Positions 14,879 to 53,227 of a DNA stretch of 64,000 nucleotides are shown in pieces. Both the position numbers and the translations under genes were made by a program. Source of the stretch: Squalus acanthias (lineage: Eukaryota); contig CM059430.1 in the NCBI GenBank assembly GCA_030390025.1, positions 75,454,001 to 75,518,000 on the forward strand, in the 5' to 3' direction. The notes below the pieces were generated by a model that saw nothing but the letters and a program-made list of their open reading frames with translations, had not been told where the DNA came from and did no database searches. The first letter of the stretch is position 1. Each line of letters opens with the position of its first letter.

Positions 14879-14906
14879 TCATTCTGCGTCCCAACACTTA
14901 ATGCAT
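14879..14906 (-). CDS. Putative last coding exon of the activating receptor (tail ...RCIKCWDAE*)
   Basis: Acceptor tttcgtttcacag; phase 2 matches the TM exon donor; AATAAA on minus at 14785-14790. Confidence 0.55.
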
Positions 14907-17161
14907 CTGTGAAACGAAATTCAGTTCAATACAGTTTTTATCGCTGATAATCCTTACATTCTTGATTACATTTACAGGTCGTCACTTTGCACCAGCAAGA
15001 AATTGCTTCTGTGTCTATATTTTGGAATTACAAGAGTTCCCATTAAAATTGTTCAGATATTTCCATTCAGTTTGATAAGATTATTCTGTTACCATAATTT
15101 GAACCTTTATATTGTGCAGTCTTAATCAATTCCGAGCCTTCATCACATAATACTTAATCTTTTAGCAATGATTTTTTCTGTCACGAAATTAAATTCAATC
15201 ATATGGATAGCACTACAAGGTTAGAAATGAAACTAAAACGGAATAGTTTTCAAACCCGTCTAGAATGACTTGTTGTACATGCATTAATCTGTGTAGCTTC
15301 ATTTATTAATTTGTATCATGTGTTGCACAATCACTTATGAATTGTGGTTTAAAGACTATTTCAAAGATGAGGAATATGCAGTCTAGTGAACCAGGGTTTA
15401 TTTAGACAACATAAGGTTGCAAAAACGTTTCAAAAGCTTTCCACCACTGGGGTTTCCCTCGCGTCATGTCTGGATATGAGCAAACTGATTGATTAAACAG
15501 CAACTCTATTATCATTGTAAGATGCAACGACCAGAATGGTAGAAGGTGCACTACATATACCATGATCTTTTCTTATCTAGCAATTCTCATGTTCCTAAAC
15601 CATCTTTGCAGCACATCCAGTGTCTGGGTCGCTTCGATCAGTTTTCTCTCCTGTGGTGTCCAGGAAATATGATACCACCAGGATTTGAGCATCATAATAC
15701 AAATTGTTTACAACTAGTTGAAGGAAAATCTAGGGCTCCAACGGATTTTGCTTGAACAGGCTTATTGTAATTAATCTACTAATGTGTGAGTAAAGTTTTG
15801 ATTTTTAGCTCCTAAAGTGTTACAACATTATATAGGCATCATAGTAATTTAAATTTCCACTAAAATAGAGACTACATACCAAACTTTCTGAATGTCAGTC
15901 TTGCAAAAGATCAGAAGCATCACGCCACTGTAAAAGTAGAGTTCGTTTTCATCGATATTTAAAGTTACTAAATGATACTGGGAAGATGCCCCATTTTGAT
16001 GTATGCAAATTAGGTAAGTATCTGTCTATTAGGAAATATGTAATACGGAGCAAAACAGGTTAATTTACTCATACTAAAATTCAGCACAAAGCATTACTAT
16101 ATTTAACGATATCTCAAGCATGAGCAAAGTACGGTTTATATCAGATTCATCACCTATATAATATGTTATTTTGGTAAAATATGTAAATAACAAATATATA
16201 ATGATCTGAGTAGAACATAGTATTCAAGGGTCAAGTTCCACTTCTATCTCCAGGTGTTAACGGGCAGGTAACGGCTTCATAATGAGGTGAGTAGACTTTA
16301 CGCCCATTTAACACGATAAAAGAACCCCGATGCATTTTGAATAGGGTCTACCGCAATACCCGGCGCCTCCTGTTTGAGTTGGTACCCAAAAACCCTTTTA
16401 ACATGCAAATAGCGGTCCTTGGATCCGGATTGATATTTTAGGGCAGAACTGAACGAAACTATGTGCTTTGCAAACTCGGAGGATTTCCACGGACCACAAA
16501 TCCAGTGAAAGCCAGACAAGTCAAGTGTGGAATTTTTTGAGTGGGTCCCGGAGGAGCACGGGAGCTGCTCTGGGCCTCACAAATTTATTTGGGCTGCTGC
16601 CGCCTCGGAAGGCCATCCTCGGCGATTTGCACGTTCCTTGCTGGCGGCTGGGAGAACCTCATCCCAGTGAGCAGTATTGGGAAATCCTTTTGGTGCGCGG
16701 CTGATTGCCGGCTCAATATTAATAAAGCCAGTACCTCAAAATCGTGGCCGCCTCGTTGTCACGGCTACGCTCTATAAGCTAGCGCGCACTGTCTGTCAGT
16801 CTCCTGCCCTAAAGTTAAAATATCCCCTGTACAGTACAAGACATTCGCCCATCAAGTCTGTGTCGGTGCTTTTCCCTGCAGCAGATACCTCGCGGGTTAT
16901 TCTAAATTCTGCCGATGGTGTAAAACGGGCGGTTACAGATCCGTCATCCTTTATGCACAGCCACGTTCTTCCATTGGCTGAAGTCCATGGAAGGGTAAAT
17001 CCGGCGGAGTTTATAAAGTGCGGCCAACTCCATTACACGCATTTTACACCATCGCACAATGTTAAAATTATCCGACAATCTTCTTTCATTATTTTCAGTT
17101 GTTGTTCTCTGTCTGCCCTGTCTTAAAGCTATCGCCCGTCAGTGATAAATGAATGTCTTAC

Positions 17162-17270
17162 CTTTCAATGCAGTTGATCCAGAAATGATCCGCAATAATT
17201 ATCGTCAGCATCAAAATGACCAACACACTCAATACCAACCGAACAACCATAACTGTCTTGTCAAGGGAAA
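17162..17270 (-). CDS. Transmembrane exon with positively charged Arg (activating-receptor type)
   Basis: Acceptor ttcatttcctag, donor gtaaga; encodes SLDKTVMVVRLVLSVLVILMLTIIIADHFWINCIER, phase 1 to 2. Confidence 0.85.
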
Positions 17271-18699
17271 CTAGGAAATGAATAAGAAACAGAAATGATA
17301 AACGGCGGTTTATATAAAAGGCGGCTGAGCTGAACCTCGACTTTACTCTCCGACGCCAAATAGAAAAATCGACCCCATTGTATTCCTGGTCCTGCACCCG
17401 AACAATGCAGTAGAGATTGAGAATTTCATTACAAAACCGTGAAGTTCTTTAGCTAAAAGTGTTATGAAGCTATTTTAATAGTGTTTTGCAACATGCACTT
17501 CAGAGAAAGGAAGTAAATATATTCTGCCATCCCTGTGCAGCGTTATTTGGGACAATATCCGTATTTTAATGACATTAGAATTCCGAACAATCAAGCTGAC
17601 ATTGGCTGAGACCAGAAGTATCAGATGGACTCGTCTTTTTTTTTCTCCGTAGAGATGTCCTGACTCCGCATTTACACGATAAATGTTCTTCTGGTGCTAA
17701 GCTAATTTTTTTTCCGCCGACGCTACATTGCAATATAAATGCACACTTATTTAAGTCTAATTATTGTTGAAACTCTCGGCACATTACCCATATTAGAAAC
17801 CTCAACAATTAAGGTAATTTTAGCTCGCGCCGTGACGGTGTGGTGAGACTATTGACAAGTATTAACAGCACCTCTCCGGACGGGCTCTGTCTCTGTCTCC
17901 TTCTAAAGGCTGGAACTTCATACAGTCCATTCATGTTATACTTTGTGCTTGTCGCTATGCCGATCAAAATCTCAATCCCATATCTACACCAAGTGAGGTT
18001 GAGAGTCCCCGGGTAAAACTCAACGGTTTTTCACGCTAGATTCAGAGCATAGAAATTTAATTCTGGTACTTTGGAGAAAATCCTCAGCTGAGTTGGTGGA
18101 ATCGTCGGAAAAAAATGGTTAAGAAACAGCATTTGGGCTATTTTGTTCTTGCGTTTACCAATTATCTTCTCTTCATTTGGAGCCTTTAAACGGGATAGCA
18201 TTAATGTATCAGTGTTGAATGACTACCGCAAAATTGTATTAATTACATAAAAAATAATTAATCAAGAGAACTGCGCATTTGAAGCGCAGCTTCGTTTATG
18301 TTCGAGAAACTTCACTGCATAAGATAAATTCATATCAATATGAATTGACATAAATGCCTGTTCAAATGTCCCTTGTCTATTGTATTATTATGACTTGACA
18401 GTATTGGTAAAAACTTCAGTTGTTACAAATCCAATATAACTTTCAAAATTGGAATGTTGTTGCGTTTTCAAATAACAGTCATAGTTGTCATGCAATTTTC
18501 CACTAAATATTCTGAAGAAATATCAAGTCGGTTACAATATCAATAGACATTGTCTCAGTTGTATCTTGCTATGTCTTTGATGTGACCTGATTGCCTTTTG
18601 TCACACCTCGGCAGATAAACAGTCAGGGTGATTTAAATGTAGTCGTCTGCTTTTGTAAGTAACACATGCATTGTTCTCTATCTATATATGCTTTGGCGA

Positions 18700-18845
18700 T
18701 TCTGTATCTCTTTACTTCACCTGAGGAAGGGGCGATCGATAGCTCCGAAAGCTTGTGATTTCAAATAAAACTGTTGGACTATAACCTGGTGTTGCGCGAC
18801 TTCTCATTTTTGTCCACCCCAGTCCAACACCGGCATCTCCGCATC
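18700..18845. mobile_element. Short Penelope-type terminal fragment
   Basis: cacctgaggaagg...ctccgaaagcttgtgatttcaaataaa resembles Penelope terminal repeats. Confidence 0.45.
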
Positions 18846-18964
18846 ATGACCAGATTAAGTATGTTGCCACATAAAATGCTAAATATTTTCTAGTATTAAT
18901 AATCACGTTAACTAATCTACAATGTTAAAATGGTAAAGAATGATATAATAAATGCAGTAACCAT

Positions 18965-19320
18965 TTAAGATAGCAAATTGTTGCAGCATAAAAGAGCAAA
19001 CATGTTGCAGTATTAAGTAGCGCACATGCATTAGAAAGTAGCAAATATATTGCAGAATTAAATTGCTAATTTGTTCCAGTACAAAATATCCAATATCTTG
19101 CAGCATAAAATAGCCAATAAGTTACAGAATTAAATAGTAATGCGTTGCAGCATCAAATATCAAATATGTTATAGCATAAACCATCAAATATGTTGCATTA
19201 TATAATAGCCGATATGTTGCATTACAATATAGCCAACATGTTGCAGCATCAAATATCAAATAGGTCGCAGAACAAAATACTCAATATATTACAGTATCAA
19301 ATTGAAAATATGTTGTAAAT
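18965..19320. repeat. Degenerate ~24-bp minisatellite
   Basis: Recurring aaatatgttgcagcataaaatagc-like unit, about 15 copies. Confidence 0.8.
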
Positions 19321-21788
19321 ATAAGAAGATAAACCGTGATCGCAGAGATTTTATTCGTGAGTTTTGGCCCATTGGCACATACCATTCTCGCCTTTAGTAC
19401 ATAGCGTATCCTTTACTTTTAGCTTGGAAATTGACTGCAGATGTCACTTTCGTGTGGGGAGATATCGATCCCGGCAAATCCAACACCTTCCTGCAGAGGT
19501 TATTGAGCCCAATACCAAATCAGTTTCTAAGCAGAAGTTTTTCTGGTGATATTTTATTCCGTGGCAGCTGTAATTTTGCGTTCGAAATCGCCAGAGCTGA
19601 TCGATGACTATCCAATATCACTTGGCTTTAAGCTGTGGGCTACAGATTGGTGGTTCGGGGAGGGACGCAATTGCTATTACAAACTGGAACACTTGTATGT
19701 TTCTAGAGGGTGAATAATTTTAAATATATGTCCATCTGAAATTATATTAGACATTATTTTATTTCCTACTCCGTGCCAGATAAAATCGGTTAATTTGACA
19801 GTGCGAACACACATTGGTTGAAAAAATCAACAAAATCATTGAACATCATGGTAGTTTTGTAATTTCAGCCTTAAATTTGACGACTGGAGATATGTAAAAG
19901 CAGAGCTGCTGCGGCGCAGAATAAATTGGGGACGACTTTAATCTGCATTTAGGGCGTACAAAATAACTCTGTACAACCAAATCGGAACTTGAAATATTTC
20001 GAATTGATTTTAGGTTTCATATTTCAAATGTGTCTCTTCTATTCTTCAACACAAATAACATGCGACGCAACTAGACAAGGTTCCGATATTTAAACAAATG
20101 AGGAAAAAATTATCAGCATGTAAAGCTGCAAATGGATAGTGCGGATATTAGTCGGTGCACGCTGAGGGGTGGTAAAAGAGCCCAGTTTTTTTAAAAATAA
20201 CATAGGCTTTCATCTGTTTATTTTTAAATAAAGTTGTAGATTTTCAACTTGCCACACGGGAGTGACACTGATGTTCAGAATGGGGCCACCTGTTATGCTC
20301 ACAATCCTCGGGCTCTTTCTACGATGCAAGCGTAATATTAAGTATTTATTTTAACTATTTAGAAATTAGACGACCGGATCTCCACTTCCATTGACTTCAG
20401 TGGAAAGGAACATCCTGCGTAGATTAGAATGAGATACTCATTCAATGAAGCTGATGGGCGGAAAATTGTTCACTGACAAAATGTCCAGCACCCATATTTA
20501 TTTTGAAATAACGAACATTTGAGGTTGCTTTCTCCACCCAGTTTCACTTACCAGAGATTCACTCGGAACTGAGCGACAATCGCAACTGGCAGGAAATAAA
20601 ACGGTAATTTTAAATAAAACTCGAAGTAGGAATGAGGGAGATACAATTAACCAGATATAAAAAGTGGGAGAGGGAGAGCCGAGAAACGCAGAGAAAGAGC
20701 AGAAAATACCTGTGTAAATAATCCCGAGGACCCATATGAACAACAGTACAGAGCGGCCAGACATATTGAACAATACAAATCGCCATCTTTGCTGTGAATA
20801 ACAACGGTCATTTGGGAAAAAATGGTTTGTGCATGATCTGTCATAAAATGACACGTAATATCAAAAGGCAGAATCGGAGCTGGCAAATGAGGCACTAATT
20901 GAAGTGCGTAGGGTGATGTTTCACGAAGCCCCATTCGGTCGGAAGTGCACCGTGTATTCCATTCCGCCAACCCAGTAACTCCGCAGCTCATCCAAATGAA
21001 TTCCGGGGTGAGAAACAAGGATTTACTAATATTGCGCTTCGGCTGAGAACCGTTCAGCTCTTGAACGCAAGTGAATATGAGGATGAAAACTGGATGATGT
21101 TGCAGCAATTATTATGCTGTAGCAAATTAATTTAATCAAATGATTTTATGACTAAAGCGACACTTTAAGACACTGCTGTAATGACGTGGTGTGGCCTGCA
21201 ATTGCATTAATGTGCTTTCCTGTCTACAGCTGGCCATAGGATCAAATATTCACCTCTAAACTGGTTTCACAGAAAGGCCCAATGGTCAGTGGCAATGTTA
21301 GCAGAGGCCTGGGACTAGAAAGTAAAAATACATCCCGGGGAATATCGAGGCTGATGCAGAAATCTAAATAATGTTAGATCGTCAGATCGCTTAAGGTGGA
21401 GACAATACATAAAAAATGTATATTAATAAGTGACAATCATCCTACCGCATGCCATCAAAAGATTGATAACCGCTGATATTTTAGCTGCTTCCGGAAATAA
21501 ATTGTTTTTTAAAAATTGCGTATAATTTCTGCATTGAACGTATAGTTGCCACATACCACATATTTAATGACATAATACAGTATTGTCAAATTAGCCACTG
21601 CAGTGGATTTATGCTCCGTGTGGAGTCAAAATGAAGCAGTCAGCGACTATCCGCTCAAAGGAGTGTCACTCGGCTTCTCTCGGAGTCGGGTCCTGACTGC
21701 CGGTCTACACTACAGGTTTGCCTATGGTGCTAATTGAATTGACTTCCTACCGACGCTAAACTTGCAGTGTAAATGCACACTTATTTCA

Positions 21789-24700
21789 CTACAGTTCAAG
21801 GTGTTGGTGAGAATGTCGGCACGTTACTTTTTTAGAAATCGGAACAATGAATCTCTCACTAGCTGTATGCGTCAGTGTCAGGTGAGACACTTGACAAGTA
21901 TAAACAGTCCCGCTCCGGACGGGCTGTGTCTTCTTCAACAGGCTGGAAACTTCATATAGTCCGTTGATGTTCAACTTTGTACTTGTCACTATGCCGATCA
22001 CAATCTCAATTACATCTTTATACCAAGTGAGGTTGAGAGTCCCCGGATGAAACTCATCCGTTTTACACACGATATTCAGAGCAGAGGTGTTTAATTCAGG
22101 TACGTTGGAGAAAATCCTCAGCGGAGTTGGCGGAACTGTAGAAATAAAACAGGTCAGAAATAGCATTTGGTCTATTTTGTTCTTGAGTTTACAAATGATC
22201 TTCTCTTCATTTGGAGCCTTTAAAACGGACGTCATTAATGTATCTGAGTATTGAATGACTGACGCGAATTTTTTATTCATTACATACAAATTAATTAACT
22301 AAAATATTTCGGAAATAATACAATGTTTTACTTCTTGTAGGCTTCGCAAAATCCCCCAGAAAATAGAACAGAGCCCTAAAGGGAGTGATTTTTGGACTTT
22401 TCATACAAGCTTGGGATGATGGGGCCTAAGTGAAGTAATTTAATGTAAAAACCTAAAGATCAGGGAAGAAAAAAAACCTGAGGAAACTGACGTGTTGAAT
22501 CTTACTGTTGGGAGAGAAACCTTTCACAGACACAAGCTGCGAGGGGCGTGGCCGGGCAGTGAACAGATCAAGCTGTCTGGGAATTGCTTACACTGCAAAT
22601 CCTACCAAGGTGCAAGAGACAAAGCAAAAACTCACAAACACATTCAAATATGAATCCCCAGGGGCAAACAAGATGCTGGAAATCTAAAAACGATGCAATG
22701 ACAATAAAACTTAGATCACACAGTTTCATAGCCATTATCCCATCAAAAAAATCAATCAACCAGGTATCCACAGAACAAATTAAAAAACCCGCCAACAGTC
22801 CTAGGACAATAAGGTGGAGATTTGGCTGTGTTTAAATCGGAAAACGATCAAGTCATGTTTAACACTGAGCAAAAGCCATCGGAACTGGCAAGCCCGCCAA
22901 AACTAGACAATTGGACTTAGCAAGCTTCATTTGCAACCAAAAGGAATCCGTTTTAGTAAGGGTTATTTGGGCGCAAAAAAGAAACAGTATAATTTGAATC
23001 CTGTGCCATAATCTCTCTCTTTTTCGGACTGGCTGATGATGCGGACACAGTGCAAAACCTACCACAAGCCACGAGGAAGAAGGCCAGAAGAGCAGCACGC
23101 AAGAAGAAACCAGTGCGACTGCCTCAGTGACCATCTGACACCTCGCAGCAACAAGGGCCTTACGGAGTCTTTTTTAAACAAAAGACTCTAATATCCTGTC
23201 AAGGATTCGTTGGTGAGCATTATCCCTGATCTCCTGAAACTAAAAACCTAGCCAGATAGTGGGATCTTTGGGAGGGATAAGGTTTTGTTTGATATATTGG
23301 GCCAAAAATTGATCCCGCTGCACGAGAGTATGCAGTGCGTACTCTCGCGTATTCTCTCTCCAATTGCCGATTTTCTGCATGCACTGCGCATGCGCTGAAA
23401 ACCGGCACTTGGTCTTTGGAAAAGGGGGCGGTTCCTCGGTGCACCGCGTGCGCGCTACAGGCTGCGCGCACGCTGTGCACTTAGTGCTTTGGACGCACAG
23501 GTAAGGACGGAAGATTTTAGAAACGAAAAAAGGAGGAGTAAGACCCACTTTTAACAAGGTGAGTAGTGAATTAAGTATTATTTTGAATTTTTTTTAACAG
23601 GTATATCTTTTTTAGAGACTTTAAAGAAAGGTAAGTTTATTTTTATAACTTTTTAAAAGATTTTAAATTTTTTCAAAAATTTAATTTTTTATTTAAAATG
23701 TTTAATTTATTTAACTATACTTATTTTATCAATGTGATGTTTTTTTTTAAATTTAATTGAGGTTTAGCTGTTATTTTGGGGGTGTGTAAGATTCATAGCT
23801 TTCACAGCACATATGTGAAACTTATGATTGGAAGATGGTGTGCTGCCATTGGCTCTAACTGAGTCACGTGATCCCACAGCTCGCACGAATTCACTACCCC
23901 GGCGGGATACGCAAGCACTGCCCAGCTGATGTCTATAACATCAAGTTCGTGCGAGCTGGATCTGAAAAAGCCAACCCGGAGTGAGAGATCGCGCCTGCTC
24001 CTTACCCCCGCGGGAACAGAGCGAGATCAATTTCTGGGCCATAGACATTTCCCTCGCTTGTACCGTGTGCTCCCCAAATCTTTGTTTAAGTAATAAGTAT
24101 GTTCCAAGTTTGTTACCTTTTCTTTTAATCAAGTAAAATTTCTTTCATCAGAATCTGTCGTTTACTGCAATTTTGTTCACAACCCTAAATAAGTCCAAAG
24201 TCTAGGAACCGGAGGGTTGTGGGAGCGATTAACATACCCCTTACACTTCTATAGCAGTTTCTAGCAATATATTGCAGGGCTATGGGGAAAGAGCAGGGGA
24301 ATGGGCCAATCAGATAGCTTTTTCAAAGAGCCGGCGCAGGCACGATGGGAAAAATGGTCTCCTTCTGTGCTTATCATTCTATAACTTTTGAATTTTGATT
24401 TTTATCAATAAACCGCCAATTTAAATATTGTAATGCATCAGACCAATAGTTTAGCATGTAACAGGACGAAACATCGTGCACAGCGAACCTTCAAATCTAA
24501 TCCTGTCCCCCTCCAAAAAAATCGATTGTTATTTCAAACTAAAAAAACGCTAGTTTTGTGTCAGTTACAAAGTTTGTGTGAAATGCACAAATTCTTATTC
24601 GGCAACATTTTTTTTTAAAGTGAGGAGATTGGTTTTGCAGAATTTGAAACAGGTCATCATCTAAGACGGGAGAATTTGTAGTTTGGGAACAAAACTATAT

Positions 24701-25927
24701 TAAAAACAAAACATTGCACACCATATGTTATGTTTTAGTAAGTTTCAGTCTGAGTAAGTTCGAGTTACCTGGATAATGCTGTGTTCATCCCGAAACATAA
24801 CACGGGGATACCGCACTGATAATATGGAAGGTGTATTGGAAGTCACATTAACTAGTCGTAATTTAAAGCGCTCGGTGTGTTTTTTTAAATTTGTTTGTAT
24901 GCAGACTTCATATTTGATTAAGAAATTTAAACAAATGAGACAACGCAGCAATATCATTACAAAATGTCGTCGCTCGCGTTTTTCGTCAAAATCTCAGTAA
25001 CATTTACTGACGGGTAAACAGCACAATCGTCTAACTTTATATTATATTCTTATATAAATCTGGAAATAGATATAAAACTATTGGTGCTCAAGATAAATTA
25101 GGAGCAGATGTTAGAACTGTATAGGGCGCATTAAAGTAAATCAAGGCGTGTCGATGGAAGAGCTGCAGAAAAGACTTAAAATGATTATAGCAACACTGTT
25201 AACATGCGTTTGGAGCAAACAACTTCTTTCACACTTTGGAATCAATAAAGTTACACAATGAAAGGAAGATTCCGGTAACTATAATACACAGTATAAAAGT
25301 GAATACATATACATCAAGGGGACGCTTCAGTTCAAATATGTTTCAACATTAAGTAGCATGGATTGAATGTGTAGTTTGGTGAAGCATTTTTAGTTTAATA
25401 TTCTAACAAGAACACCACACAGCTCTGTGTAGCAACTCATTCGGCTCCACAGTTTCACTTACCGGAGACTTTGATCGTTGAGCCTGTTCCGGTTACAATC
25501 CTGCTTCCCAGGTTTGTCACTCCGCAGTAATAGACCCCAGAGTCCCACGCACTGATATTCAGGAGATGAAAGGAGGCTCCCCCTTGTTTAAAAAGGAGAA
25601 ATGTTTTCCTGCTGTCGGAGGCTGTTTGCAGAAATTTACTTTCGCCAAGTTTCCACCAATAAACACTCACATCTGAGTTATCTTTAAAAATGGGGAATGC
25701 GCAATGGAAGGTGATGTTTGAACACACGAGCAAGCTCGTGCTTTCAGGAGCCTGGGAGACTCGGAACTGAGCGTCAATAGCAACTGTCAGGAAACACAAT
25801 AATAATTATAAATAAAACATATAAATGGAATGCACGGGGATTCATGAAAAGAAAAAGAACAATAGAAAATACCTGTGCACATAATCCACAGGAGCCGTAT
25901 GGACTGAAGTACACCGGCTACGGGCAT
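21789..25927 (-). CDS. Gene B: non-rearranging VJ-C1 Ig-superfamily receptor (SIRP/NKp30-like ectodomain); activating or secreted form
   Basis: Leader 25873-25927 (MPVAGVLQSIRLLWIMCT), V 25463-25783, C1 from 22135 to donor at 21828 or stop at 21789; GT-AG phase-1 introns; leader and V exon sizes (55, 321 nt) equal gene A. Confidence 0.88.
21828..22135 (-). CDS. Gene B C1-set Ig domain exon
   Basis: VPPTPL..IVCKTDEFHPGTLNLTWYKD..NGLYEVSS.L..YTCQVSH.TL; acceptor ttctacag. Confidence 0.92.
23299..24040. mobile_element. ~750-bp non-autonomous TIR element (Harbinger-type MITE), copy 1, in gene B intron
   Basis: TIRs gggccaaaaattgatc / gatcaatttctgggcc; AT-rich core shared with the other three copies. 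Confidence 0.85.
25463..25783 (-). CDS. Gene B V-set exon with germline J-like G strand
   Basis: FRVSQAPE..TFHC..VYWWK..DSGVYYC..TGTGSTIKV; acceptor tttcctgacag, donor gtaagt. Confidence 0.93.
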
Positions 25928-32899: not shown

Positions 32900-34100
32900 C
32901 AGGCGAGATGAGCTCCAGCAGCAACAACACCAGCCATACCAGCCGCAGCAGCCTTCTCCACACCGATCTGCAGCTCCACAGGAGAGAGGGGATGTGCATG
33001 GGCTGCTCCTCGCCAGAGGTGATTCCCCCGACATCGGGTATAGAGGCTGAGGATTAGATTCTTGGACATGACTGAACAGCAGTGCTTCAGGAGGCTAAGG
33101 TTATTGCGTCAGGTCGTGGCAGACATTTGTAGCTTGCTGGAGGAAGACCTGCTGCTAACTGGACCTGATGGACATGCGTTACCAGTGGCTGTCCAAAGAC
33201 ACCACTGCACTCAACTTCTTTGCCTCCGGCTCCTTCCAGGTATCTGCAGCATACATTTGCAGGATCTTACAGTCGGCCGCACATGGATAGATCACCCAGG
33301 TGACCGATGCCATGTTTTATAAGTCAGTTTCACTTATGTTCACTTTGCCACTGATGAAGCCTGTCAGACTGAGCAAACGCTCGGCTTTGTGACACTGGTT
33401 GGCTTCCCACATCTGCAGGGCGTCATCAACTGCACGCATGTGCCTATCAAGGCAACCTTAGATCAAGCAGGAGTGTTCGTGAACCAGAAGGGATTCCACT
33501 CCCTAAATGTGCAGCTCGTCTGCAACCACAAAACGATCACCATGCATGTGTGTGCCAGATTCCCAGGGATCTGTCATAACTCTTTCCTCCTGCGCCAGTC
33601 CAACATCCCTCAGCTCTTCACACCTGCGACCAGACTCGCTGGCTAGCTGCTTAGAGACAAGGTCTATGCACTGATGGCGAGGCTGATGACTCCCTTGAGG
33701 AGGCCAAGCAATGAGGTCAAAGAGCAGTATAATCAAAACGATATGACGATCAGATGTGTAATAGAGCAAGCAATCACGATGCTGAAGATGCGCATCAGAT
33801 GCCTGGGCACATCTTGAGGAGCCCATCAATATGGACGAGGCAGCTACTCCAGAATTATCATCGTATGCTGCGTGCTGCACAACATAGCGCAGCAGCGAGG
33901 ATTGGAGCTGCAGGAGCAGCAAGGTGCTTCTTTGGAGGAGGATGAGAAGGAGGAGCAGGTGGAACACGTGGAGGAGGAGGAACCTCTGGTAGAGAAGGCA
34001 CCAGCAGCGGCAAACATTGCTGCCTGGCAGGCACTGGATGGCCTCATAATGGCACGACTTGGTTATGTTGCATCATTGCACCGGTATGACAACAAGAACT
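32900..34100 (+). pseudogene. PIF/Harbinger (HARBI1-like) DDE transposase, inactivated
   Basis: ALNFFASGSFQ, GFPHLQGVINCTHV, NQKGFHSLNVQLVC, ARFPG..HNS, IEQ..MLKMRIRCL, CCVLHNIA; catalytic Asp positions read Asn; stops and frameshifts. Confidence 0.9.
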
Positions 34101-34356
34101 TCCCCCCCCCACCACACCAACACCACAAAGCAGTCCTAACATGGCCAAAATGTTCCTGTCACACACACCCATTGCTCAAGGTTAAGTAATGTCCTAACAT
34201 TTACTCGAAATGACAAGGTCACTTCCCAGGTAGAAGGCAAAAAGGCACAAGACGGGAAAGTGCTGCAAAGAAATACATTTTGTGCGTCATAAACAGAACT
34301 AATATTTTGAAACACACCCATGTGGATACCTTTGTTAGCTCCCATTGTGTCATTTT

Positions 34357-36437: not shown

Positions 36438-36455
36438 TGGTGTCAGAAGTGGGAT
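36438..36455 (+). promoter_or_regulatory. Primer-binding site complementary to tRNA-Leu 3' end
   Basis: TGGTGTCAGAAGTGGGAT, one spacer base after the LTR end ...TTACA. Confidence 0.9.
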
Positions 36456-43674: not shown

Positions 43675-45255
43675 GCATAGAAGCACATAAGCATAGAAGA
43701 TAGGAGCAGGAGTAGGCCATTCGGTGCCTCGAGCCTATTCCGCCATTTAATGAGATCATGGCTGAACATCCAAATTCAGTGCCATGTCCCTGCTTTCTCC
43801 CCATATCCCTTGATCCAATTAGCCTTAAGAAATATATCTATCTCCTTCTTGAATATATTTAATGAATTGGCCTCAAATGCTTTCTGTGGTACAGAATTCC
43901 ACAGGTTCACCACTCTCGGTGAAGAAATTCCTCCTCATCTCAGTCCTAAATGGCTTAGCTCTTATCCTTAGACTGTGACTACTGGTTCTGGACACCCCAC
44001 CATCGGGAACATCCTTCCTGCATCTAGTCTGTCTAGTCCTGTTGAATTTTATAAGTTTCAATGAAATCCGCTCTCATTCTACTAAACTCTAGCGAATATC
44101 AGCCTAATCGACTCAATCTCTCTCCATACGTCATTGCTGCCATCTCAGGTATCAGTCTGGTAAATCGTCGCTGCACTCCCTCGATGGCAAGAACAACCTT
44201 GCTCAGATAAGGCGAACAAAACTGCACACAATACTCAAGGTCTGGTCTAACCAAGGCCCTATACAACTGCAGCAAGTAATCCTTGCTCCTGTACTGGAAT
44301 GCTCTCGCTATGAACGCCAACATACCATTTGCCTTCTTAACCGCCTGCTGCACCTGCATGCTTACCTTCAGCGACTGGTGCACAAGGACTCCCAGATCTC
44401 GTTGCACTTCCCCTTTTCCCAATCTATTGCCGTTCAGATAATAATCTGTCTTCCTGTTTTTTGCCACCAAAGTGAATAACTTCGCATTTATCCACATTAT
44501 GCTGCATCTGCCATGCAGCTGCCCAATCACCCAACCTGTCCAAATCATACTGGAGTTTCTCTGCATCCTCCTCACAGCACAGACACACTCCCAGCTTTGT
44601 GTCGTCTGGATACTTAGATATATTACATATATTTCACTCGTCTAGATCATTAATATATATTGTGAATAGCTGGGGTCCTAGCACCGATCCCTGTGGTGCC
44701 CGATTAGTCACTGCATGCTTCTCGGAAAAAGACCCATTTATTCCAACTCTTTCCTTTCTATCTGCCAACCATTTCTCTATCCAAATCAGTACCTCAACCT
44801 AAATTCCATAAGCTTTAACTTTGCACGCTAATCTCTTATGCGGGACTTTATCGAAAGCCTTCTGAAAGTCCAAATACACCACATCCACTATTTTTCCCTT
44901 ATCTAATCTACCAGTTACATCCTCAAAAAATTCCAGTAGATTAGTCAGGCATGATTTCCCTTTTGTAAATCCATGTTGACTTTGTCCGATCCTTTCACTG
45001 TTTTCCGAGTGCTCTTGCTATAACATATTTTATGATGAACTCTAGCATTTTGCCCACTACCGATGTCAGGCTTACTGGTCTATAAATCCCCGTTTTTTTC
45101 TGTCATTTTTTTTAAATAGTGGGGTTACCTTAGCTACCCTCCAATCCATGGGAACTGTTCCAGGGTCTATAGAATTTTGAAAGATGACCAGCAATGCATC
45201 TATTATTTCTAGGGCCACTTCCTTAAGTACCCTAGGATGTAGATTATCAGGCGGT
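43675..45255 (-). mobile_element. 5'-truncated CR1 LINE (same family as 1-2080)
   Basis: Minus ORFs PDNLHPRVLKEVALEI and RPDLEYCVQFCSP; tail at ~43680. Confidence 0.92.
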
Positions 45256-45798
45256 AGTGCTTTAAAACTAGCAGAATTTCCAACAGCATTGTCCGAAACA
45301 TCTCTCATGTCTGATCTGAAATGGTGAAGGAAACTGAGGGAGAACTTTGGCGCAATCCTCACAATCTGCAGCCGTATCTTCGCCGGACGATCAACGGAAA
45401 GCTAGCACAAGCGAAGTAACGGCCAGGATCCGCCAATCTCGGCAGATTACGCCGGTCTCCCATCAGGGAACTCCGTGGAAATGCTAAGCGCAGAGCAATG
45501 AAATATGGAATGTTCCAGAAGGAGTGCATGACCTTTTCATCCCAGTTTTCCTTAGAATAGGAGGTCCCGCGGCGAGGCCGCTCCATCTGTTCGTGTAGAA
45601 ACTTAAAATTTCGAAATGGAGCCTCTTCTGGCGCATATACAACTGTTGCAACAAATCTGACTAAAGGGTCAAAGAGACATGTTCTGAACACATAGACAGG
45701 ATTTGACGCTGACGTATTTCAATTTCCGGCTCTTCAACGTTTTTACAAACCACCAGCCAGTTCACGGTCTGTCGCTCCGAGTGATCAATTGGTTCAGA

Positions 45799-48700
45799 AT
45801 GTTGGCGAGTGATGTACTTCAGTGCCTCTCTGTTCTGGGATTCATGTTCACAGGTACCTGTTGCTTCTATACCTTGCTTTCTCGCTAAACCGCAGAGCTG
45901 CTTATCATCCATTTGATACAACATGTCTTATTGGCATTTGCTGACATTGCCTGACTTACTTACTCACGCGCTTTTTCACCTGTAATATTCGCACTAATTC
46001 GGTTTTGATTTTCTTTTCCGATAGGCTCCTGCGAAAATTCGCTCAAAGTGACTCAGCTCCCTGAAGTCGCGAGCAGCAACACGGGTACAAGCGTTTCCTT
46101 TCATTGCTCAATTCCCTTATTTCAAGACGGACCACCGGTGAACGTGTACTGGTGGAAACAGCGTGATAATAAATATCTAAGCACTGGACCTGATGACAGA
46201 AAAGTAACTGGCTCCAAAACTAAATTCAGCGGCTTCCTTCAGATAATCAATGTGACTTTCCAGGACTCGGGAGAATATTATTGCACTGTCGCCCATCGGG
46301 GCAGAATAGTTGGAAACGGAACGGGATCCAATTTAACTGTCTGGGGTAAGTATAAAAGAAGCGGCGAATGAGATCGATGTGACAGTATTATTTCACGATT
46401 CCAAGAAATTCTCTATTGTGCTTTGTAGGATTCACAATGCAACTTAAATCCCAGTCATTTTATGTGTATATATTCAAATTGCACTGTTGACTGCTACTCG
46501 TTACATGCTAATTTGTAGTACAATATTACAGCAATATTAATCAAGACGAGCAGCATCGGATTTACCCCAAGTACACAGTAAGCAAGTATACAAAAGGCGT
46601 TTGAGTTTTAAATTGCAGTGTCCGTTAAGGATCTGTATAATGGCTGGCGCGTATATCCGCCGCTGTAAGCACCGATCTTACCCTATTTACTGGATTCTTT
46701 TGTCTGCGTTGGTTACGGAGGGAAGACTGTTGATATTGGGACTCAGATTCGCATATTTATAATTTAATTCTCCACAAGTTAAGATCTTTGATAGCCAAAT
46801 TGCTAATGGCTAAAGTCCGCACTGTGTAGCTGGATCCTCGGACCCCTTATATTAATCATCATTGCAGCCTCCAGAAAATATGGTTTAGCACCGAATCTTC
46901 GTGCCATAGCACCTTTCACTTGGGTAAATTATACTTCCTCATCAGATGTTATGCTCAACGGGATGGAATTTGTCCACAGCTGTACCGCAAAACAAGCGAC
47001 AATGAGTCGGCAGCCCGATATACACCACACTCAATGTTCTTTCCCATTAGAAAAGAAAATCGGCGAGCTGTAAAAGAGGCGGCCTATTCGCTGCAATCCG
47101 GTTTTCGCCTGGCTAAAGCAGTTAAAGTTACCGCCGATATAAATTTGACTTTTATGAAGATGCCGGTTACGACGTAGGTACCAATAGCGCACAGTGAACA
47201 CCAGGCCCCCACCACTACCCCAACTCCCCGCCCACATTGTGCTGTCAGGAATGGGCTGGAAGAAAGACGGTGGATGATGTCCATGTAACATTATTTTCCT
47301 CCATTTTTCTAGTTCCGCCAACTCCACTGAAAATTGTCTCTCAGGAACCTGAAAAGGATTCACCTGCGACTCTGACTCTACTTTGCACAACATCTCCCTT
47401 TTACCCGCAGAATATCAGCTTCACTTGGTATAAGGATGGAACCAAAATTACACCAAGAATAAATAACATTAATCAACCAAATACCGATGGACTATATGAA
47501 GCTTCCAGCCGGTTGGAAGAGACGCAGACTGTCGAGACCGGGACCGTTTATACCTGCATGGTGTTTCACAGTGCCCTCAAAATTCCAGCCACGGTCACCC
47601 ACATTGTCACCTTCAGGAACACAGGTAATATTTTAGATAGAATCATTGAAACTTACAGCACAGAAAGAGACCATTAGGCCCGGCGTGCCTGTGCGGGCTC
47701 TTTGAAAGAGCTGTCCAAGTTAATCCCCACACCAGCTTTTTCCCCATAACTCTGAAAAGTAGTCCTCTTCCAGTACACGTCGAATTGCCTTTTGTAAATT
47801 CCTACAGGAAACTGGTTCCACCAACCTTTCTGGTAATGCGTTCTGGATCCTAACAATACTTCGTGGGAAAATAATTCTCCTCAATTCACCTCATGTTTTT
47901 AACCAATAATTTTAATCTACGATTGATGGTTAACGACTCACTCCGTACATAACTGCAGGCCCTTATCATTGTTATCATCCTGGTAAGCCTCCTCAAAACC
48001 TCTTCAAGAACTTGACATCCTTCCTAAATTGTGGTGCTCAGAATTGGACACAGTACTCCAGCTGAGGACTAGTCAGTGATTTGTCAAGGTTTAGCATGGC
48101 TTCCTTGTTTTTGCATTCACAGCCTCTATTTACAAATTCAATCATCCCATGTGCTTAATTAATCACCTTATCATCTTGCCCTTCCATCTTCAAAGATTTG
48201 TCAATATGCACCCCAGGTTCTCCTGCCTCTGTAAGACCCTCAAAATAGAACTATTTCGATTATACTGCCTCTCCATGTTGTTCCACCCAATGTGCACACT
48301 TCACTTGCCCGCATTAAATTGATCCAGACATGTGTCTGCACGTTTCACCACTCCATCTATGTCCTGCTGAAATCTTCTACTATCTTTTTCACTATTTACT
48401 ACGTTGCCGAGTTGTGCATCATCTGCAAACTTCAAAATTGTATTCCCTGTATCCAACTCCTGGTCATTGAGGCATATCAACACAAGCATTGGTTTTAAGA
48501 CCTATCCATGGGGGACCCCACTGCATAATTCTCTCCCGTCAGAAAAGGCATTCTTTCACCACGACATTCTGCCTCCTTTCACATAGCCAATTAAGTACCC
48601 AAATTACCACCATCCTTAAAATCCTATGCGCCTCTATTTGCCGAATAAGTCTATTGTGAGTTACATTATGAAATTACTTTTTAATGTCCATATATCTTCT

Positions 48701-51700
48701 GAACTACCTTCATCAAACGTCTCTGTTAATTCATCAAAGAACTTAATCAGGTTAATCAGACATGATTTTCCTTTAACAAATCCATGTTGGTTGTCGCTTA
48801 TTAAGCCATGCGTCTGTGAGTCAGAATTAATGTTGTCCTTACCAAGGGTCTCTAGTAATTTTCCCACCACTAACGTTAGATTTGCTAGACTTTAGGTAAC
48901 TGGTTTATCTATCGCACTTATCGTGCAAGTAAACGGTTTGCTGTGATCCATCCCCCCACCATTTGTTTACTTTTACTCAGATACAATTATCCGCGGAGTT
49001 CGGCCAGGTGTTGTGCTCCATGGTCTCTGCAACTGCTGTTCGACATCTTCTGCCCCAATGGAAGTCACGGTCCAGGTGTGGAACTGAGATGTGGGACAGT
49101 ATCCCGCAGTAAATCGCACCCTGTGATTCCAAGTCGCAACATGTCGGAGCTGGACAGCTGTCTCCAGCATTCCTTAAATCGTGTTGTAATCTTCAGCAAG
49201 CTGTAAATTTGGCAAGTGCCGTCTTTAGCCCTCTAATAAAACAACAAACTGAACATGATCGAAGAATTCAGTGGAAATAAAAATGGGGAGTAATGCACAT
49301 CTATCTTCCGATTGGCTATCGCCCATTTTACTGTAATGCACAATGTCAGAATTACTCCCTGATATCGCAGTCTTATTTCAACAAGAAACAAGCATGAAAT
49401 CACATTTGAGTTTCAGCCAAGATAAAGTAAAATTAACTATTCTTTAAGCATGAAAAATTAAACAAAGACGAACATTTTTATTGTGTTTCATAAAATTGTA
49501 CCTTAATGCAAAAAATAAATGGTAAAAATTATTTAAAATATTTTAATGTTTCTGATCTTTTAAGTCATAGTCTTATTGAATTGAACAGTTTAGGGATACA
49601 TGTTGATATATTTCATCTCAATCTCGAAGGTGGTGAGATCATCCATTACTTGCTGATTTCTGCAAGTGCAGGGGGCGGGTTGGTAGTCCTGGTGCTGTCT
49701 GTCATCATTGGGAAGCAATGTGTCTCCAAGAAAAATAAAGGTAAGAAAGAATTTAGACTTTTTACTAAAGCAAGAACAACTTTCAAAGAGAGTGTGAACG
49801 AGAACTTCCTGTTACATGCACAAAGAATGTTAGTTGATTGCATTTAAAAGGTTCAAAGAACAGTTACTCTGTCTCACAGGAACAGGGGCGTTTGCTGAAA
49901 GGGTTTTTTAACTATATGGGACGCTCCACAGTCACCCCAGTCTGCTTCATTTAAAAAAATTGCAGCACCTGATGTATTTAATATGGGTTTAATCACTACC
50001 GGTGTAGCGGTAAATTCGAATTTCTGAAATGTGGTGGAATTTTCCGAGTTCCCCCAGCCAGCGGCAGCGACTGGCGGGATCTTTACTGGAAAATCTATTT
50101 TAATTTTTTGCCAATTTACGCCCATTCGGGACAAGGAACGTAGAATTGTGGGTAGTTCCCCCCGCGATTTTCCAATCAGGATCGCGCAGGGTCCGAGGCA
50201 ACACCGGCATCTGAAAAATCCATTGTCAAACACAGGTCGGAAACCAACAAATCCTTCAAATGTGATATCTAGATCATTTTATACCTTACATTGAATCTAC
50301 CCGAAGTGTCTTTCCAGGCTGAGTAAATGCCTCATTGTAAAGTCATGAATTTAATTCATTACCAGGAGCGCTGAACGATGGCGAAAGATCCGACTATCGC
50401 GAACAGCCGGTATGTGTGTATGATTCATTCTAATATATCTCAGATATTAACATATATATAACAGTAGTAATCTATTTAAAGCAATATGTTGTCACGTTAT
50501 AATCTATTGCTCTCAAGATTCATACAAAAATAGCGCAGATTGAATTCAGCGCTTATGGAAAAAATCTTCGTCAATAGGTCAGAGGCAGCTGAATTTTAAA
50601 TGTCATCTGCTGATGGCGAATAAACATATTGCTTAAAAGTTACCATCAACCGTAATTAATAATAAGGAACTGTTTTTGCCTCCTGGACACAGCGGACAGT
50701 ATGTTGGCGGTAGTCCATAATACTGTGCCCAATAACTAACTCTGAACTTAATCCACAGTACGCGAGTTCAAATCCTATCATTGTAGTTTGAGATTTTGAA
50801 TTCAGGTTTCAAAATATGTTAATAAATGATGTTATCTGAAGCTGTGGGATTGTCTTAAAAAGTCAGGGAATGAAACCTGCCATTCTTACCCGGTCTGCAC
50901 TCTATGTGACTCCAGTCCACACCAAGGTGGGTGACTCTCAACTTCCCCCTGAAGTCGCCTCTGAATCTCGCCACCAGCAACTTCTAAGGGAAACCAGGGA
51001 TGGGCAACAAACGCCGACCTTGTCAGCGATGCCCTCATCTCGAGAATTAATACAAATTCCGGCACAATATCACAGGCTGGCGGTGCCAGTTAAGCGATTT
51101 GTTGTTCCCGGAATTTTGGGTGAATTTGCGGAAATGTTAAGAAGACGTGGACGAGTAATCGGCATTTCCTTCAGTCGCCGCATTCTCCCGTCATAATATC
51201 CATCTGAATTTGGAAAACCTCCAATGTCAACGCCCAACCTTCACCTCCTTGGAAGGAATTTGCTGCTTCACCGCACAGGCCGCGAGACCAAGCAAGCACG
51301 GAGATGCTTATCGAAAATTGAAGTTATTTGCCCGCCATCTCCCACGTATTGAAATCAATAGACAGAAAAGAGTTGGCATAAATTCGAAGTGTTCCAATAT
51401 ATACCGCCTATTACCTGTGATTACCGATCCCGGGAAGCGTCCGCGAAAATTCCAGCCAACAAGAGAGTTATTCCAACTAAATCTGATTCTTTCAGTGTAT
51501 ATGTCTTTCCTGATATCTGTTCGACATTTGTTTTCCATTTGTATCCCTAGTTCTAATTCATCTCCGTGATTGAGTCATCAGGGTCTGCCTTAAAGTGAAA
51601 GACAGATAGACATTGATGTAGATAGAAATATATAAATATAGATATATATATAGTTATAGATATAGATATAGATATAGATATTGTGACATTGTGGATGAAT

Positions 51701-53227
51701 TAATAGCTGAACATAAGATTCCATGTGTAGTCCAGAAGCTGAATGACAAGCTTTAATATAATCTCTTGTATTCCATGGCCTTATCCTTGATTGCAGAATT
51801 ATAATCGTTGCTTACTTTTCTGGACATTGAAAGTGACCTGACTCTTGTTAACCCCAGACCCCTTTATGTCTCATTGTGCTAATTCAATTCCATCCATTGT
51901 ATAACTACGATACACATTTACAATTATGCCTAAAGCTCAACTTTATAAAGTAGCTAAATGGTTTTACTATTTTTTTTGTGCAACGTAAGTGTAACTTGAA
52001 GTATGGAAACCTTGTCAGATGGAGATTATTTCAACCAGACTACTCCTATCAATGGACTTCAGAGATGAACATTGATCCTTTATTTTACTTTACTTTCTTA
52101 AAATGTAAATTTCGAGGGATTTCCGTAACTTCGGCGGGACACCCGTGGAAGTCCCAGACAAACGACGTAAAGGGCGCGTTCATCCTATTATACAGTTTCT
52201 ATGGGGATTCTGGTGGTCATCCAGCAAACTGAGATCAGGAGACCGGTTGTAGCTCCGCGCATTTTGGGGGTTGATTTTCGTCTTTACCGTCTGGGCGCTA
52301 AGCAATGCATGGGCAGAAAGGGATATCTGGTGGGGAGGATCGCTCGTCCTGAGGGAATTTCTTTGCATTCCTTTCAATGATAGGAAAATTCGCGGGTTCT
52401 GTTGCCAGCAGCGGCTCCGCAAGATTTTCCAATCCATGCTCAGCCCTGACGATGCTTCAGGTCCAGGCGGTAAAGAAGAAACCTCCTTTCACCCTCCCCA
52501 AACTGTTCGAATATTTGTGATAATGCGACGGATTCCGCCTGCTGGGCACTGACGGCGCGGACACGGAGCACAAACAAGGAGGTTGTGGCAGCCGTGACTG
52601 ATATTCCATCCATTCATTTATGTGATGGACTCTGGACCTGCTGTTTTCGGGCCTGCTCGCATCCTTCTGCGCAGGGAGCGCCCAAACGTGGTATCTGCCC
52701 TAACAACATAACAAGATATATTTTTCCGTTCCTTCCATGCAGGGAGCAGCTGATGTGATGGCGTCTTATGCCACATTAGATCTGAACAAGTCCCGGAAAG
52801 GTCCAAGAGCGAAGCATCAAGAGAGGACAGTGTATGCCCAGGTAGGGCTCAGGAGCAGAACAAAGAGTCACAGATTACCTGTAATTAATGGGCATGCGGG
52901 ATAGTGTAAGAAAGACCTTGAATAGTACTATGGTAATCTTTTATATTTAATTTGTAATTATATCCTCGCTAATTCTGCGAGGCTCCAGCTATTCCAATGA
53001 ATGTGCTAAACATTATTCTTTAAATAACTACAATATCGAAGTAATGATATTCCCAATAATTGATTTCACAGACCAAGCAACGGGCGCCAGATCATAAGTT
53101 GACCTACGCTGCACTAGACATGACAGGCTTCAAGAAAACATCAAAGCCTAATGTTAAGGATAAGAGCACGGAGTATGCTCAGCTACAGATGAAAAATCAA
53201 AGAGCAGACGTTATTTACACGGAATGA
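45799..53227 (+). CDS. Gene A: inhibitory VJ-C1 Ig-superfamily receptor, SIRP-alpha-like tail, 365 aa
   Basis: Exons 45799-45853, 46025-46345, 47313-47624, 49630-49740, 50366-50409, 52743-52841, 53072-53227; all GT-AG, compatible phases, 1098 nt open; leader, V, C1, uncharged TM, tail with ASYATL, TVYAQT, LTYAAL, TEYAQL, VIYTE. Confidence 0.9.
46025..46345 (+). CDS. Gene A V-set exon with germline J-like G strand
   Basis: LKVTQLPE..SFHC..VYWWK..LQIINVTFQDSGEYYC..GNGTGSNLTV; ttttccgatag / gtaagt. Confidence 0.95.
47313..47624 (+). CDS. Gene A C1-set exon
   Basis: [43 protein letters not shown]. Confidence 0.95.
47640..48900 (-). mobile_element. Decayed CR1 LINE in gene A intron 3
   Basis: QHGFVKGKSCLINL and LKFADDAQL on minus strand. 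Confidence 0.8.
49630..49740 (+). CDS. Gene A transmembrane exon
   Basis: YLLISASAGGGLVVLVLSVIIG followed by basic KQCVSKKNK; donor gtaaga. Confidence 0.9.
50690..51050 (+). mobile_element. tRNA-derived SINE (same family as 2750-3188)
   Basis: gagttcaaatcc B-box; tail gggatgggcaacaaacgcc...gcgatgccctcatc. Confidence 0.65.
51610..51682. repeat. (ATATAG)n-type microsatellite
   Basis: gatatagatatagatatagata. Confidence 0.85.
52743..53227 (+). CDS. Gene A cytoplasmic ITIM/ITSM exons (52743-52841 and 53072-53227)
   Basis: GAADVMASYATLDLNKSRKGPRAKHQERTVYAQ | TKQRAPDHKLTYAALDMTGFKKTSKPNVKDKSTEYAQLQMKNQRADVIYTE*. Confidence 0.9.

Follow-up and report, generated by a model that had tools for sequence, protein, structure and literature searches.

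Does a cartilaginous fish carry, side by side in its genome, an inhibitory and an activating receptor that are both built on an antigen-receptor-like chain that does not rearrange? This question is raised by a stretch of 64,000 nucleotides (nt) of Squalus acanthias DNA (GenBank assembly GCA_030390025.1, contig CM059430.1, positions 75,454,001 to 75,518,000; hereafter the window). An initial annotation had seen there two head-to-head paralogues, each with a variable domain that includes a joining-like strand, V(J), and with a single constant domain of the C1-set. One of these, here called gene A, lies on the + strand; the other, gene B, lies on the - strand and was said to end in a transmembrane (TM) segment with an arginine. 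It is quite probable that A and B are two neighboring members of a chondrichthyan family of non-rearranging V(J)-C1 proteins that has inhibitory as well as adaptor-type members, A being of the inhibitory and B of the activating type. Judging from their sequences, they are not a matched pair but neighbors from two subfamilies.

Two neighboring V(J)-C1 genes

The two divergently oriented paralogues are indeed present. Gene A extends from 45799 to 53227 (positions are those of the window) and its seven exons are open and intact, as read directly from exons, phases and splice sites. As a check of the reading frame, each exon was read separately and the exon lengths were summed; they add up to 1098 nt or 366 codons including the stop, with every phase matching. 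The gene begins with a 55-nt coding leader (45799-45853), MLASDVLQCLSVLGFMFT plus 1 nt, followed by the donor GTACCT. The V(J) exon of 321 nt (46025-46345) has AG/GT flanks and phases 1-1 and ends with ...GNGTGSNLTVW, and the C1-set exon of 312 nt (47313-47624), likewise of phases 1-1, ends at ACAG/GTAATA. The stalk and the TM segment GEIIHYLLISASAGGGLVVLVLSVIIGKQCVSKKNK, which is uncharged as had been claimed, are encoded by an exon of 111 nt (49630-49740). Next comes a 44-nt exon for a cytoplasmic linker, ALNDGERSDYREQP, at 50366-50409 (phase 1 to 0; flanks CAG/ and /GTATGT), located because it resembles the linkers of the proteins P0152, P0162, P0170, P0172 and P0164 in our protein set. The exons listed earlier for gene A are thus real, but this small one was missing from the list. 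Two further cytoplasmic exons of 99 nt (52743-52841) and 156 nt (53072-53227) complete the gene, with the stop codon at 53225-53227. In a tblastn search of the window, gene A tracks the Heterodontus francisci protein XP_067905935 (P0152) exon by exon, with identities of 78% for the leader, 66% for V, 57% for C1, 55% for the TM segment and 72% for the last exon.

Gene B starts with the same elements, that is, a 55-nt leader (25927-25873), MPVAGVLQSIRLLWIMCT plus 1 nt, and a 321-nt V(J) exon (25783-25463) with AG/GT flanks, phases 1-1 and the end ...TGTGSTIKVS. Its single C1-set exon (22135-21828) has a length of 308 nt as opposed to 312 nt in gene A, ends at AAAAAA/GTAACG and is in phase 0, so that the identical exon design ascribed to the two genes has to be given up. 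The TM exon of 109 nt (17270-17162), SLDKTVMVVRLVLSVLVILMLTIIIADHFWINCIE, carries an arginine in the outer third of the segment and is entered in phase 1 and left in phase 2. The last exon of 28 nt (14906-14879) encodes (R)CIKCWDAE and a stop at 14879. Both of these exons are open and the tail lacks tyrosines, in agreement with the initial annotation.

The Pfam V-set profile matches exon 2 of gene A with an E value of 5.3e-11, up to profile position 108 of 109, and exon 2 of gene B with an E value of 9.5e-6 (26.2 bits, the cut-off being 26), up to position 107. As the match reaches the end of the profile in both genes, the J-like strand (GNGTGSNLTV in gene A) lies inside the V exon. The C1-set profile matches the third exons with E values of 4.2e-15 and 2.1e-10, respectively, and tblastn with four family proteins locates a single C1 exon in each gene and, within gene B, an additional dead copy. 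No CACAGTG or CACTGTG motif is found near either V exon, and no recombination signal sequence (RSS) composed of heptamer, 12/23 spacer and nonamer, with up to two mismatches, is found anywhere in the window. Since V and J-like parts share one open 321-nt exon and the window holds no RSS-like site, the description of both genes as non-rearranging V(J)-C1 genes stands.

The identity between gene A and gene B amounts to 35% for V (37/105 residues) and 46% for C1 (45/98), and the two genes sit in different starred clades of the V tree described below. These values, together with the separate clades, speak against the proposal that A and B form a matched pair. Transposon-like open reading frames (ORFs), for example, at 27952-28299, 44099-44575 and 33389-33646, fill the 19.9 kb that separate the two leaders, and this interval contains no compact shared promoter. 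Among the ORFs are fragments resembling reverse transcriptases and possibly one ORF of the DDE type.

The tyrosine tail of gene A

The cytoplasmic tail of gene A comprises about 110 residues with six tyrosines. Its 99-nt exon contributes ASYATL and TVYAQ, and its last exon contributes LTYAAL, an immunoreceptor tyrosine-based inhibitory motif (ITIM), TEYAQL, which resembles an immunoreceptor tyrosine-based switch motif (ITSM), and VIYTE. The strict ITIM pattern [SIVL]xYxx[ILV] is fitted by LTYAAL only, TEYAQL and ASYATL being near-fits. The motif TVYAQV requires read-through of a donor site; in the spliced reading it becomes TVYAQ-T, and the junction ...VYAQ/TKQRAP is the same as in P0170 from Heptranchias. 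Therefore, of the five tyrosine motifs that had been proposed, the ITIM is present, but the number has to be corrected and TVYAQV exists only in the unspliced reading. Pfam gives no match in the tail exons of gene A. For the tail of P0170, a match to SIT was rejected as sub-threshold (E value of 0.035, 15 bits against a cut-off of 27.6).

When the motifs are compared, their order in gene A (ASYATL, TVYAQ-T, LTYAAL, TEYAQL) is SIRP-like; the tail motifs of mammalian SIRP-alpha are ITYADL, LTYADL and TEYASI (PMC5413580). It is possible that this SIRP-alpha-like tail is convergent. Pairs of an ITIM and a TEY motif also occur in Siglecs and CEACAM1.

We take gene A to be a working inhibitory receptor, and the steps from phosphorylation to SHP-1/2 are inferred from the ITIM literature. 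The predicted protein would begin with a signal peptide, to be followed by a V domain that includes its J-like strand, by a single C1 domain, by the uncharged TM segment and by the tyrosine tail. After phosphorylation LTYAAL, TEYAQL and probably ASYATL would recruit phosphatases of the SHP-1/SHP-2 type, as in SIRP-alpha.

Gene B and its relic copy

Gene B aligns with XP_067905015 (P0042) of Heterodontus, with identities of 81% for V, 70% for C1, 50% for the TM segment and 73% for the C-terminus (tblastn). The RefSeq model of XP_067905015 has V, C1, an Arg-bearing TM segment and the end ...CINCWDAD in one frame. Residues 1-150 of P0042 are transposon-derived and match many reverse-transcriptase-like places in the window; this N-terminus is probably mis-predicted. 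As to signaling, gene B carries the conserved activating module of the family, made up of an arginine near the outer face of the TM segment, ...IIIxDHF at the inner face and a short, cysteine-rich tail without tyrosine. This module would be expected to pair with an Asp-bearing ITAM (immunoreceptor tyrosine-based activation motif) adaptor, for example, FcR-gamma, DAP12 or CD3-zeta. While the sequences show how the exons are laid out, that the genes belong to the family, how widely the latter is spread among taxa and that both signaling types are mixed on the V tree, all signaling steps, ligands and expression are inferred for both genes.

Compared with the phase-1 pattern that is seen in gene A, in a relic copy and in the contig of a relative that is treated below, the C1 exon of gene B lacks one base. 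With C1 left in phase 0 and the TM exon entered in phase 1, gene B is out of frame as assembled; its TM and tail exons are present and open, and the orthologous RefSeq model is in frame. The only phase-1 donor, a cryptic one within the C1 exon (GCTA/GTGAGA), was rejected, as its use would delete the G strand. It is close to an even chance, though slightly under it, that the frame is intact in the animal, the missing base being an assembly error or an allele. Gene B is either freshly disabled, mis-assembled at the A-run or limited to soluble products.

The relic copy lies on the - strand. A leader together with the start of a V exon is found at 20561-20750, between the C1 and TM exons of gene B: 20561-20620 matches the V start at 25759-25818 and 20690-20750 matches the leader at 25850-25913, with identities of 85% and 77%, respectively. 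A C1 exon with its flanks follows at 17692-18261, with 77% identity over 581 nt to 21725-22298. This C1 copy has lost the AG of its acceptor, has TGA in place of the B-strand cysteine codon and carries a frameshift, while a phase-1 donor (ATGG/GTAATG) is kept. The long intron of gene B also contains a tandem array (19025-19315) with a period of 24 nt, seen as 8 overlapping copies of 76 nt that are 63-74% identical.

A family of cartilaginous fishes

When the V exon of gene A is compared with 1.84 billion representative proteins, 474 matches are found with an E value of at most 1e-3, of which 4 are at 1e-30 or below. The best single-domain matches of this exon are proteins of 220-500 amino acids (aa) with the same V-C1-TM layout. 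The protein searches require shared 5-residue words and operate within a length window, so that distant relatives may escape. With the Heterodontus orthologue of gene A as query, all 51 of 51 matches are chondrichthyan (E value of at most 1e-5), and a profile of 18 members gives 38 chondrichthyan matches out of 39 (at most 1e-8). The lone exception is a tapasin-related protein from a bird with 60 bits, as compared to at least 131 bits for the family members. The cartilaginous-fish origin that had been proposed for the system is confirmed in so far as the best relatives are proteins of Heterodontus and Heptranchias, with 66-81% identity.

Gene models in RefSeq name at least 21 chondrichthyan species, among them the chimaera Callorhinchus. 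Since the family occurs in this chimaera as well as in elasmobranchs, it is older than the split between holocephalans and elasmobranchs. In the alignment its signature is ...NGTGSxLxV followed directly by VPPTPLKI, and this is found in chimaeras, sharks and rays. Four models, P0013 and P0193 of Callorhinchus as well as P0125 and P0081, are family members without C1 (V-TM-tail). One C1-less model has been named NCR3-like automatically, and it has the ITIM tail of the family (53% identity over 73% of the tail query).

A look-up of the clusters of ten relatives returned RefSeq names from eleven cartilaginous-fish species. The automatic names include tyrosine-protein phosphatase non-receptor type substrate 1-like, immunoglobulin lambda-1 light chain-like, tapasin-related protein-like, natural cytotoxicity triggering receptor 3 ligand 1-like, HLA class II DO beta-like, SIRP-alpha-like and SIRP-beta-like. 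In total, at least 10 different and mutually inconsistent product names are in use within this one family. A literature search, with most subscription journals and all supplements outside its scope, found no publication on a chondrichthyan SIRP-like or VJ-C1 paired family. The suggestion that the system might be undescribed can therefore be retained with respect to a describing paper, but gene models have existed in at least 21 species. The models of the family are already public, if inconsistently named, and its kind, paired receptors of the immunoglobulin superfamily (IgSF) with ITIM or charged TM, is known.

Inhibitory and activating members

In many family members the C-terminal end is of the gene A kind, with xxYAxL and TEYAxx motifs. 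An arginine in the outer part of the TM segment in combination with a short tail is found in seven proteins of our set, with such members in Heterodontus, Scyliorhinus, Callorhinchus, Leucoraja and Mustelus. The module R...IIIxDH(F/V) is common to four: P0042 of Heterodontus, P0049 of Scyliorhinus, P0201 of Callorhinchus and gene B.

The V tree was built from 125 rows (109 of them different) and 106 columns by a quick search with branch support from the Shimodaira-Hasegawa-like approximate likelihood-ratio test (SH-aLRT) only, and many of its forks are open. The V and C1 sets were restricted to proteins of up to 520 aa and to rows covering at least 85% of the V or 80% of the C1 exon. Gene A falls into a starred clade of 19 rows (SH-aLRT 95) with proteins of Heterodontus, Scyliorhinus, carpet sharks and skates or rays. 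Within it, the pairing of gene A with P0092, a row on a long branch (1.92), was treated as an artefact; the nearest row by identity is P0164 (75%). Gene B belongs to a clade of five rows (SH-aLRT 99) together with the ITIM-tailed P0175, P0180 of Scyliorhinus torazame and P0051 of Mustelus, and the Arg-TM protein P0042. Its V domain is 81% identical both to the ITIM-tailed P0175 of Heptranchias and to P0042.

If the signaling type is mapped on the V tree, at least six changes are needed for 8 activating versus 45 inhibitory rows (72 of the 125 rows are unclassified and were not counted). Therefore, Arg-TM forms are scattered among inhibitory relatives, as in the paired-receptor families of mammals. 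An inhibitory member with ITIM is represented by gene A, with LTYAAL in its exon 7, while similar ectodomains with opposite signaling are absent from the comparison of A with B and present at the family level. As far as the sequences tell, the family is of the paired-receptor kind. The notion of an inhibitory/activating system thus holds for the family, in which both types are interspersed, but not for A and B as such, which are unmatched and of which B is out of frame.

Skates provide a further observation. P0005 of Amblyraja radiata has an ITIM tail and a V-C1-C1 ectodomain in which the C1 domains are almost the same, and P0004 of Leucoraja erinacea has a near-identical V-C1 part, an Arg-bearing TM segment and a tail of 13 residues. 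Together, these two look like a matched pair across two skate species.

Likeness to known receptors

The tree covers no SIRP, PRARP, immunoglobulin light chain (IgL), T-cell receptor (TCR) or UrIg sequences, and PDB profile scores were used in its place. When the V exon of gene A alone is compared with the PDB, titin I-set domains and antibody light chains come out on top, with about 36 bits, and SIRP is absent from the best 60. For the C1 exon, the highest summed score is that of UrIg2 (9dmx), to which three domains contribute 20-32 bits each; the constant domains of immunoglobulin (Ig) heavy chains come next, and SIRP-alpha reaches 38 bits. The best single-domain UrIg2 match of this exon (32.4 bits) is below the single-stretch match to IgM (48.9 bits) and similar to those of other Ig constant domains. 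Over two-domain stretches the family profile scores 69.3 bits with Ig lambda V-C, 63.3 bits with SIRP-alpha d1-d2 (192 positions) and 60.2 bits with UrIg2 V-C1; it also scores 42.6 bits with SIRP-alpha d3, including the VPPT start. The ectodomain of the family is thus roughly as far from light chains as it is from SIRPs and UrIg2. Searches with the Heterodontus orthologue, with the 18-member profile and with a tail alone brought up no SIRP of tetrapods or teleosts. The tail-only search, in which a Callorhinchus member served as query and 26 candidates were scored, found 4 proteins, all of them from Callorhinchus.

The shark genes resemble SIRP genes in several respects: a V domain with J-like strand in one exon, a membrane-proximal domain of the C1-set, a clustered multigene family, an inhibitory member whose four-tyrosine tail alternates ITIM and TEY motifs, and a partner whose TM segment bears a basic residue and whose tail is short. 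They differ in having one C1 instead of the two of mammalian SIRP (V-C1-C1) and in the ectodomains of A and B, which are 35-46% identical and not near-identical. Furthermore, the TM segment of SIRP-beta carries a lysine, whereas the shark family has an arginine together with ...DHF. A review of 2022 (PMC9652883) lists SIRPs for amniotes only, namely mammals, birds and lizards, and calls their origin unknown.

The shark genes can also be set beside other non-rearranging receptors. UrIg has been described as a secreted VJ with three constant domains, and UrIg2 of the nurse shark as a VJ with nine constant domains and a TM segment (PMC12227049). A non-rearranging single-exon VJ, a split leader and C1-type domains are common to these proteins and the Squalus genes, but the latter have one C1 exon and an ITIM tail, whereas UrIgs are described, in that source, without ITIM or charged-TM partner. 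Ig light chains and TCR chains share the V(J)-C1 architecture, a split leader of the 55-nt class and phase 1-1 exons with the shark genes, and are among the best V-domain matches. In contrast to them, the shark family has no RSS or separate J, possesses TM and signaling exons, and carries an N-glycosylation site (NGT) in its J-like strand.

For two other groups the comparison depends on their general description. PRARP was reportedly described by Fu et al. in J Immunol in 2019, a paper that is cited in PMC10751288. It is said to have a VJ exon that does not rearrange, a TM segment and an ITIM, with an ectodomain that is V-C1 in species other than birds, and to occur as paired genes in bony vertebrates. 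By this description, the likeness to the shark genes would extend to the non-rearranging VJ, V-C1, TM, ITIM and pairing of genes. The difference would be that PRARP comes from bony vertebrates and that the shark family has Arg-TM members; we know of no activating Arg-TM partner of PRARP. The NITRs of bony fish are teleost-specific, and their ectodomain, which is V or V-I, lacks a C1-set domain. They are reminiscent of the shark family in their J-like V motifs, in having ITIM and charged-TM members and in forming large clustered families, and they are set apart from it by the missing C1-set domain and their restriction to teleosts.

Contigs and a candidate terminal exon

Four out of seven sequencing runs were mapped on 16700-22400, the part of gene B with the C1 and TM exons, at 90% likeness. 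In run X4, one contig of 202 nt lies on 21832-22031, within the C1 exon of gene B, with 15 differences. In run X3, one contig, which has a depth of 4.6 and a short side of 29 letters, joins 21832 to 21306, with 7 letters in between. Re-read on the - strand, it fits a C1 exon of 309 nt and phase 1 that is spliced after a CAG/ acceptor at 21309. This suggests, tentatively and on weak evidence, a short terminal exon at 21298-21308 (GC CTC TGC TAA), which after a phase-1 join would give G-L-C-stop. Such a Gly-Leu-Cys end is reminiscent of the C-terminal cysteine of light chains. The contig hints at a soluble isoform in a relative and, as a single weak record, supports the idea that the C1 exon of the window is one base short.

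Alternative explanations

Several points weigh against the view that A and B are an inhibitory and an activating-type member of one family. The RefSeq models that support it are predictions, the ectodomains of A and B have only 35% (V) and 46% (C1) of their residues in common, and only one of the tyrosines in gene A's tail lies in a strict ITIM. The exons of gene B add up to 821 nt (55 + 321 + 308 + 109 + 28), which is not divisible by 3, and downstream of its C1 exon no in-frame donor to the TM exon is seen. The TM exon adjoins the dead C1 copy and may therefore belong to that copy. Its comparison with P0201 of Callorhinchus (14/27 identical; E value of 0.042 in one comparison) is statistically weak, the same positions being kept nonetheless. 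No transcripts of this species were found in the seven runs, each holding 5-6% of the sampled words and none recorded as RNA, and nearly all contigs of the four mapped runs lie on repeats (18419-18991 and 22239-22400).

Part of these points would be accounted for if gene B were a decaying pseudogene, so that the locus would consist of one working inhibitory gene plus wreckage, without a working pair. The C1 donor that falls 1 nt short of gene A, the relic and the contig of the relative agrees with this, as do the dead leader, V start and C1 copy inside the gene and the V-to-C1 and C1-to-TM junctions, which no contig of the four runs covers on 16700-22400. However, leader, V, C1, TM and last exon are all open, with intact splice sites and the canonical cysteines and tryptophan, the sole defect is one base in a run of six A that could be an assembly error or an allele, and the Heterodontus orthologue is modeled intact. 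The pseudogene has an appreciable chance of being the right answer, although the balance leans against it. It is quite improbable that gene B instead encodes a secreted, light-chain-like V-C1 chain, made by way of the terminal exon at about 21308 or by read-through, and no membrane receptor. The X3 contig does join the end of C1 to 21306 and fits G-L-C-stop, and 14 models of the family lack a TM segment and stop at most 60 residues from the C1 motif Y.C.V.H, although some of these models may be truncated predictions. Yet this is a single contig of low depth with a short side of 29 letters, its printed ends are non-canonical, and the run is only guessed to be RNA. Moreover, it comes from another organism or a paralogue; the X4 contig on C1 from the same organism differs at 15 of 200 positions.

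Other alternatives concern the ancestry of the family. That A and B are true orthologues of tetrapod SIRP-alpha and SIRP-beta, and the locus a shark SIRP locus, might be concluded from the many members named SIRP-alpha-like or SIRP-beta-1-like in RefSeq, the profile alignments to SIRP-alpha d1-d2 and d3, the alternating xxYAxL/TEYAxx tail and the V-C1-C1 layout of the skate model P0005. This is unlikely, because Ig lambda V-C and UrIg2 V-C1 score alike, the V exon alone does not bring up SIRP among its best 60 PDB matches and the homologue searches retrieved no SIRP of tetrapods or teleosts. The activating TM segment with Arg and DH also departs from the lysine of SIRP-beta, and a tail with ITIM and TEY, being known from Siglecs and CEACAM1 too, may be convergent. 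Germline-joined Ig genes are known in sharks, and it seems rather doubtful, if conceivable, that the family goes back to clusters of germline-joined Ig light chains to which TM and ITIM exons were added, and is not a relic from before the RAG transposon. The light chains that are the best single-domain PDB matches of V after titin, Ig lambda V-C as the best two-domain stretch and the members named Ig lambda-1-like would fit such an origin. The signature NGTGSxLxV plus VPPTPLKI, however, is the family's own and, as it is shared by chimaeras, sharks and rays, old, and the window contains no RSS remnants. We regard it as a long shot that the family is the cartilaginous-fish branch of the lineage leading to SIRPs (and PRARPs), a never-split sister of the IgL and TCR chain genes, maybe with a soluble light-chain-like isoform.

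Meaning of the family

If the descent from the SIRP and PRARP lineage were true, the ancestor of jawed vertebrates would already have possessed a germline V(J)-C1 chain wired to an ITIM tail or to an Arg-TM adaptor module. With a V(J)-C1 family that has SIRP-like inhibitory tails and a conserved Arg-TM module in chimaeras, sharks and rays, the origin of SIRP-type checkpoint receptors becomes testable. A second question that becomes testable is whether non-rearranging antigen-receptor-like chains signaled through ITIM and ITAM adaptors in early jawed vertebrates. The current RefSeq names for the family are unreliable. The locus itself is of lower value, as its activating member is defective as assembled.

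Other features of the window

The flanks of the window hold transposon-like ORFs only, there is one run of N (11239-11390), and Rfam gives no match within the window. The segment 18419-18991 is a very high-copy repeat on which contigs of all four mapped runs pile up, with a summed word depth of up to about 1.4e5. Many of these contigs end at 18847 and continue into unrelated sequence, which is like a short interspersed (SINE) or other dispersed element; it is without a match in Rfam. In the first 10 kb (1-10000), the GC skew, that is, the excess of G over C, is about +0.3 over most of the length except for 2001-4000. On its + strand, the same region has several ORFs that look like reverse transcriptases, such as 5888-7177 (429 aa), and these are probably long interspersed element (LINE) copies stacked in the same orientation.

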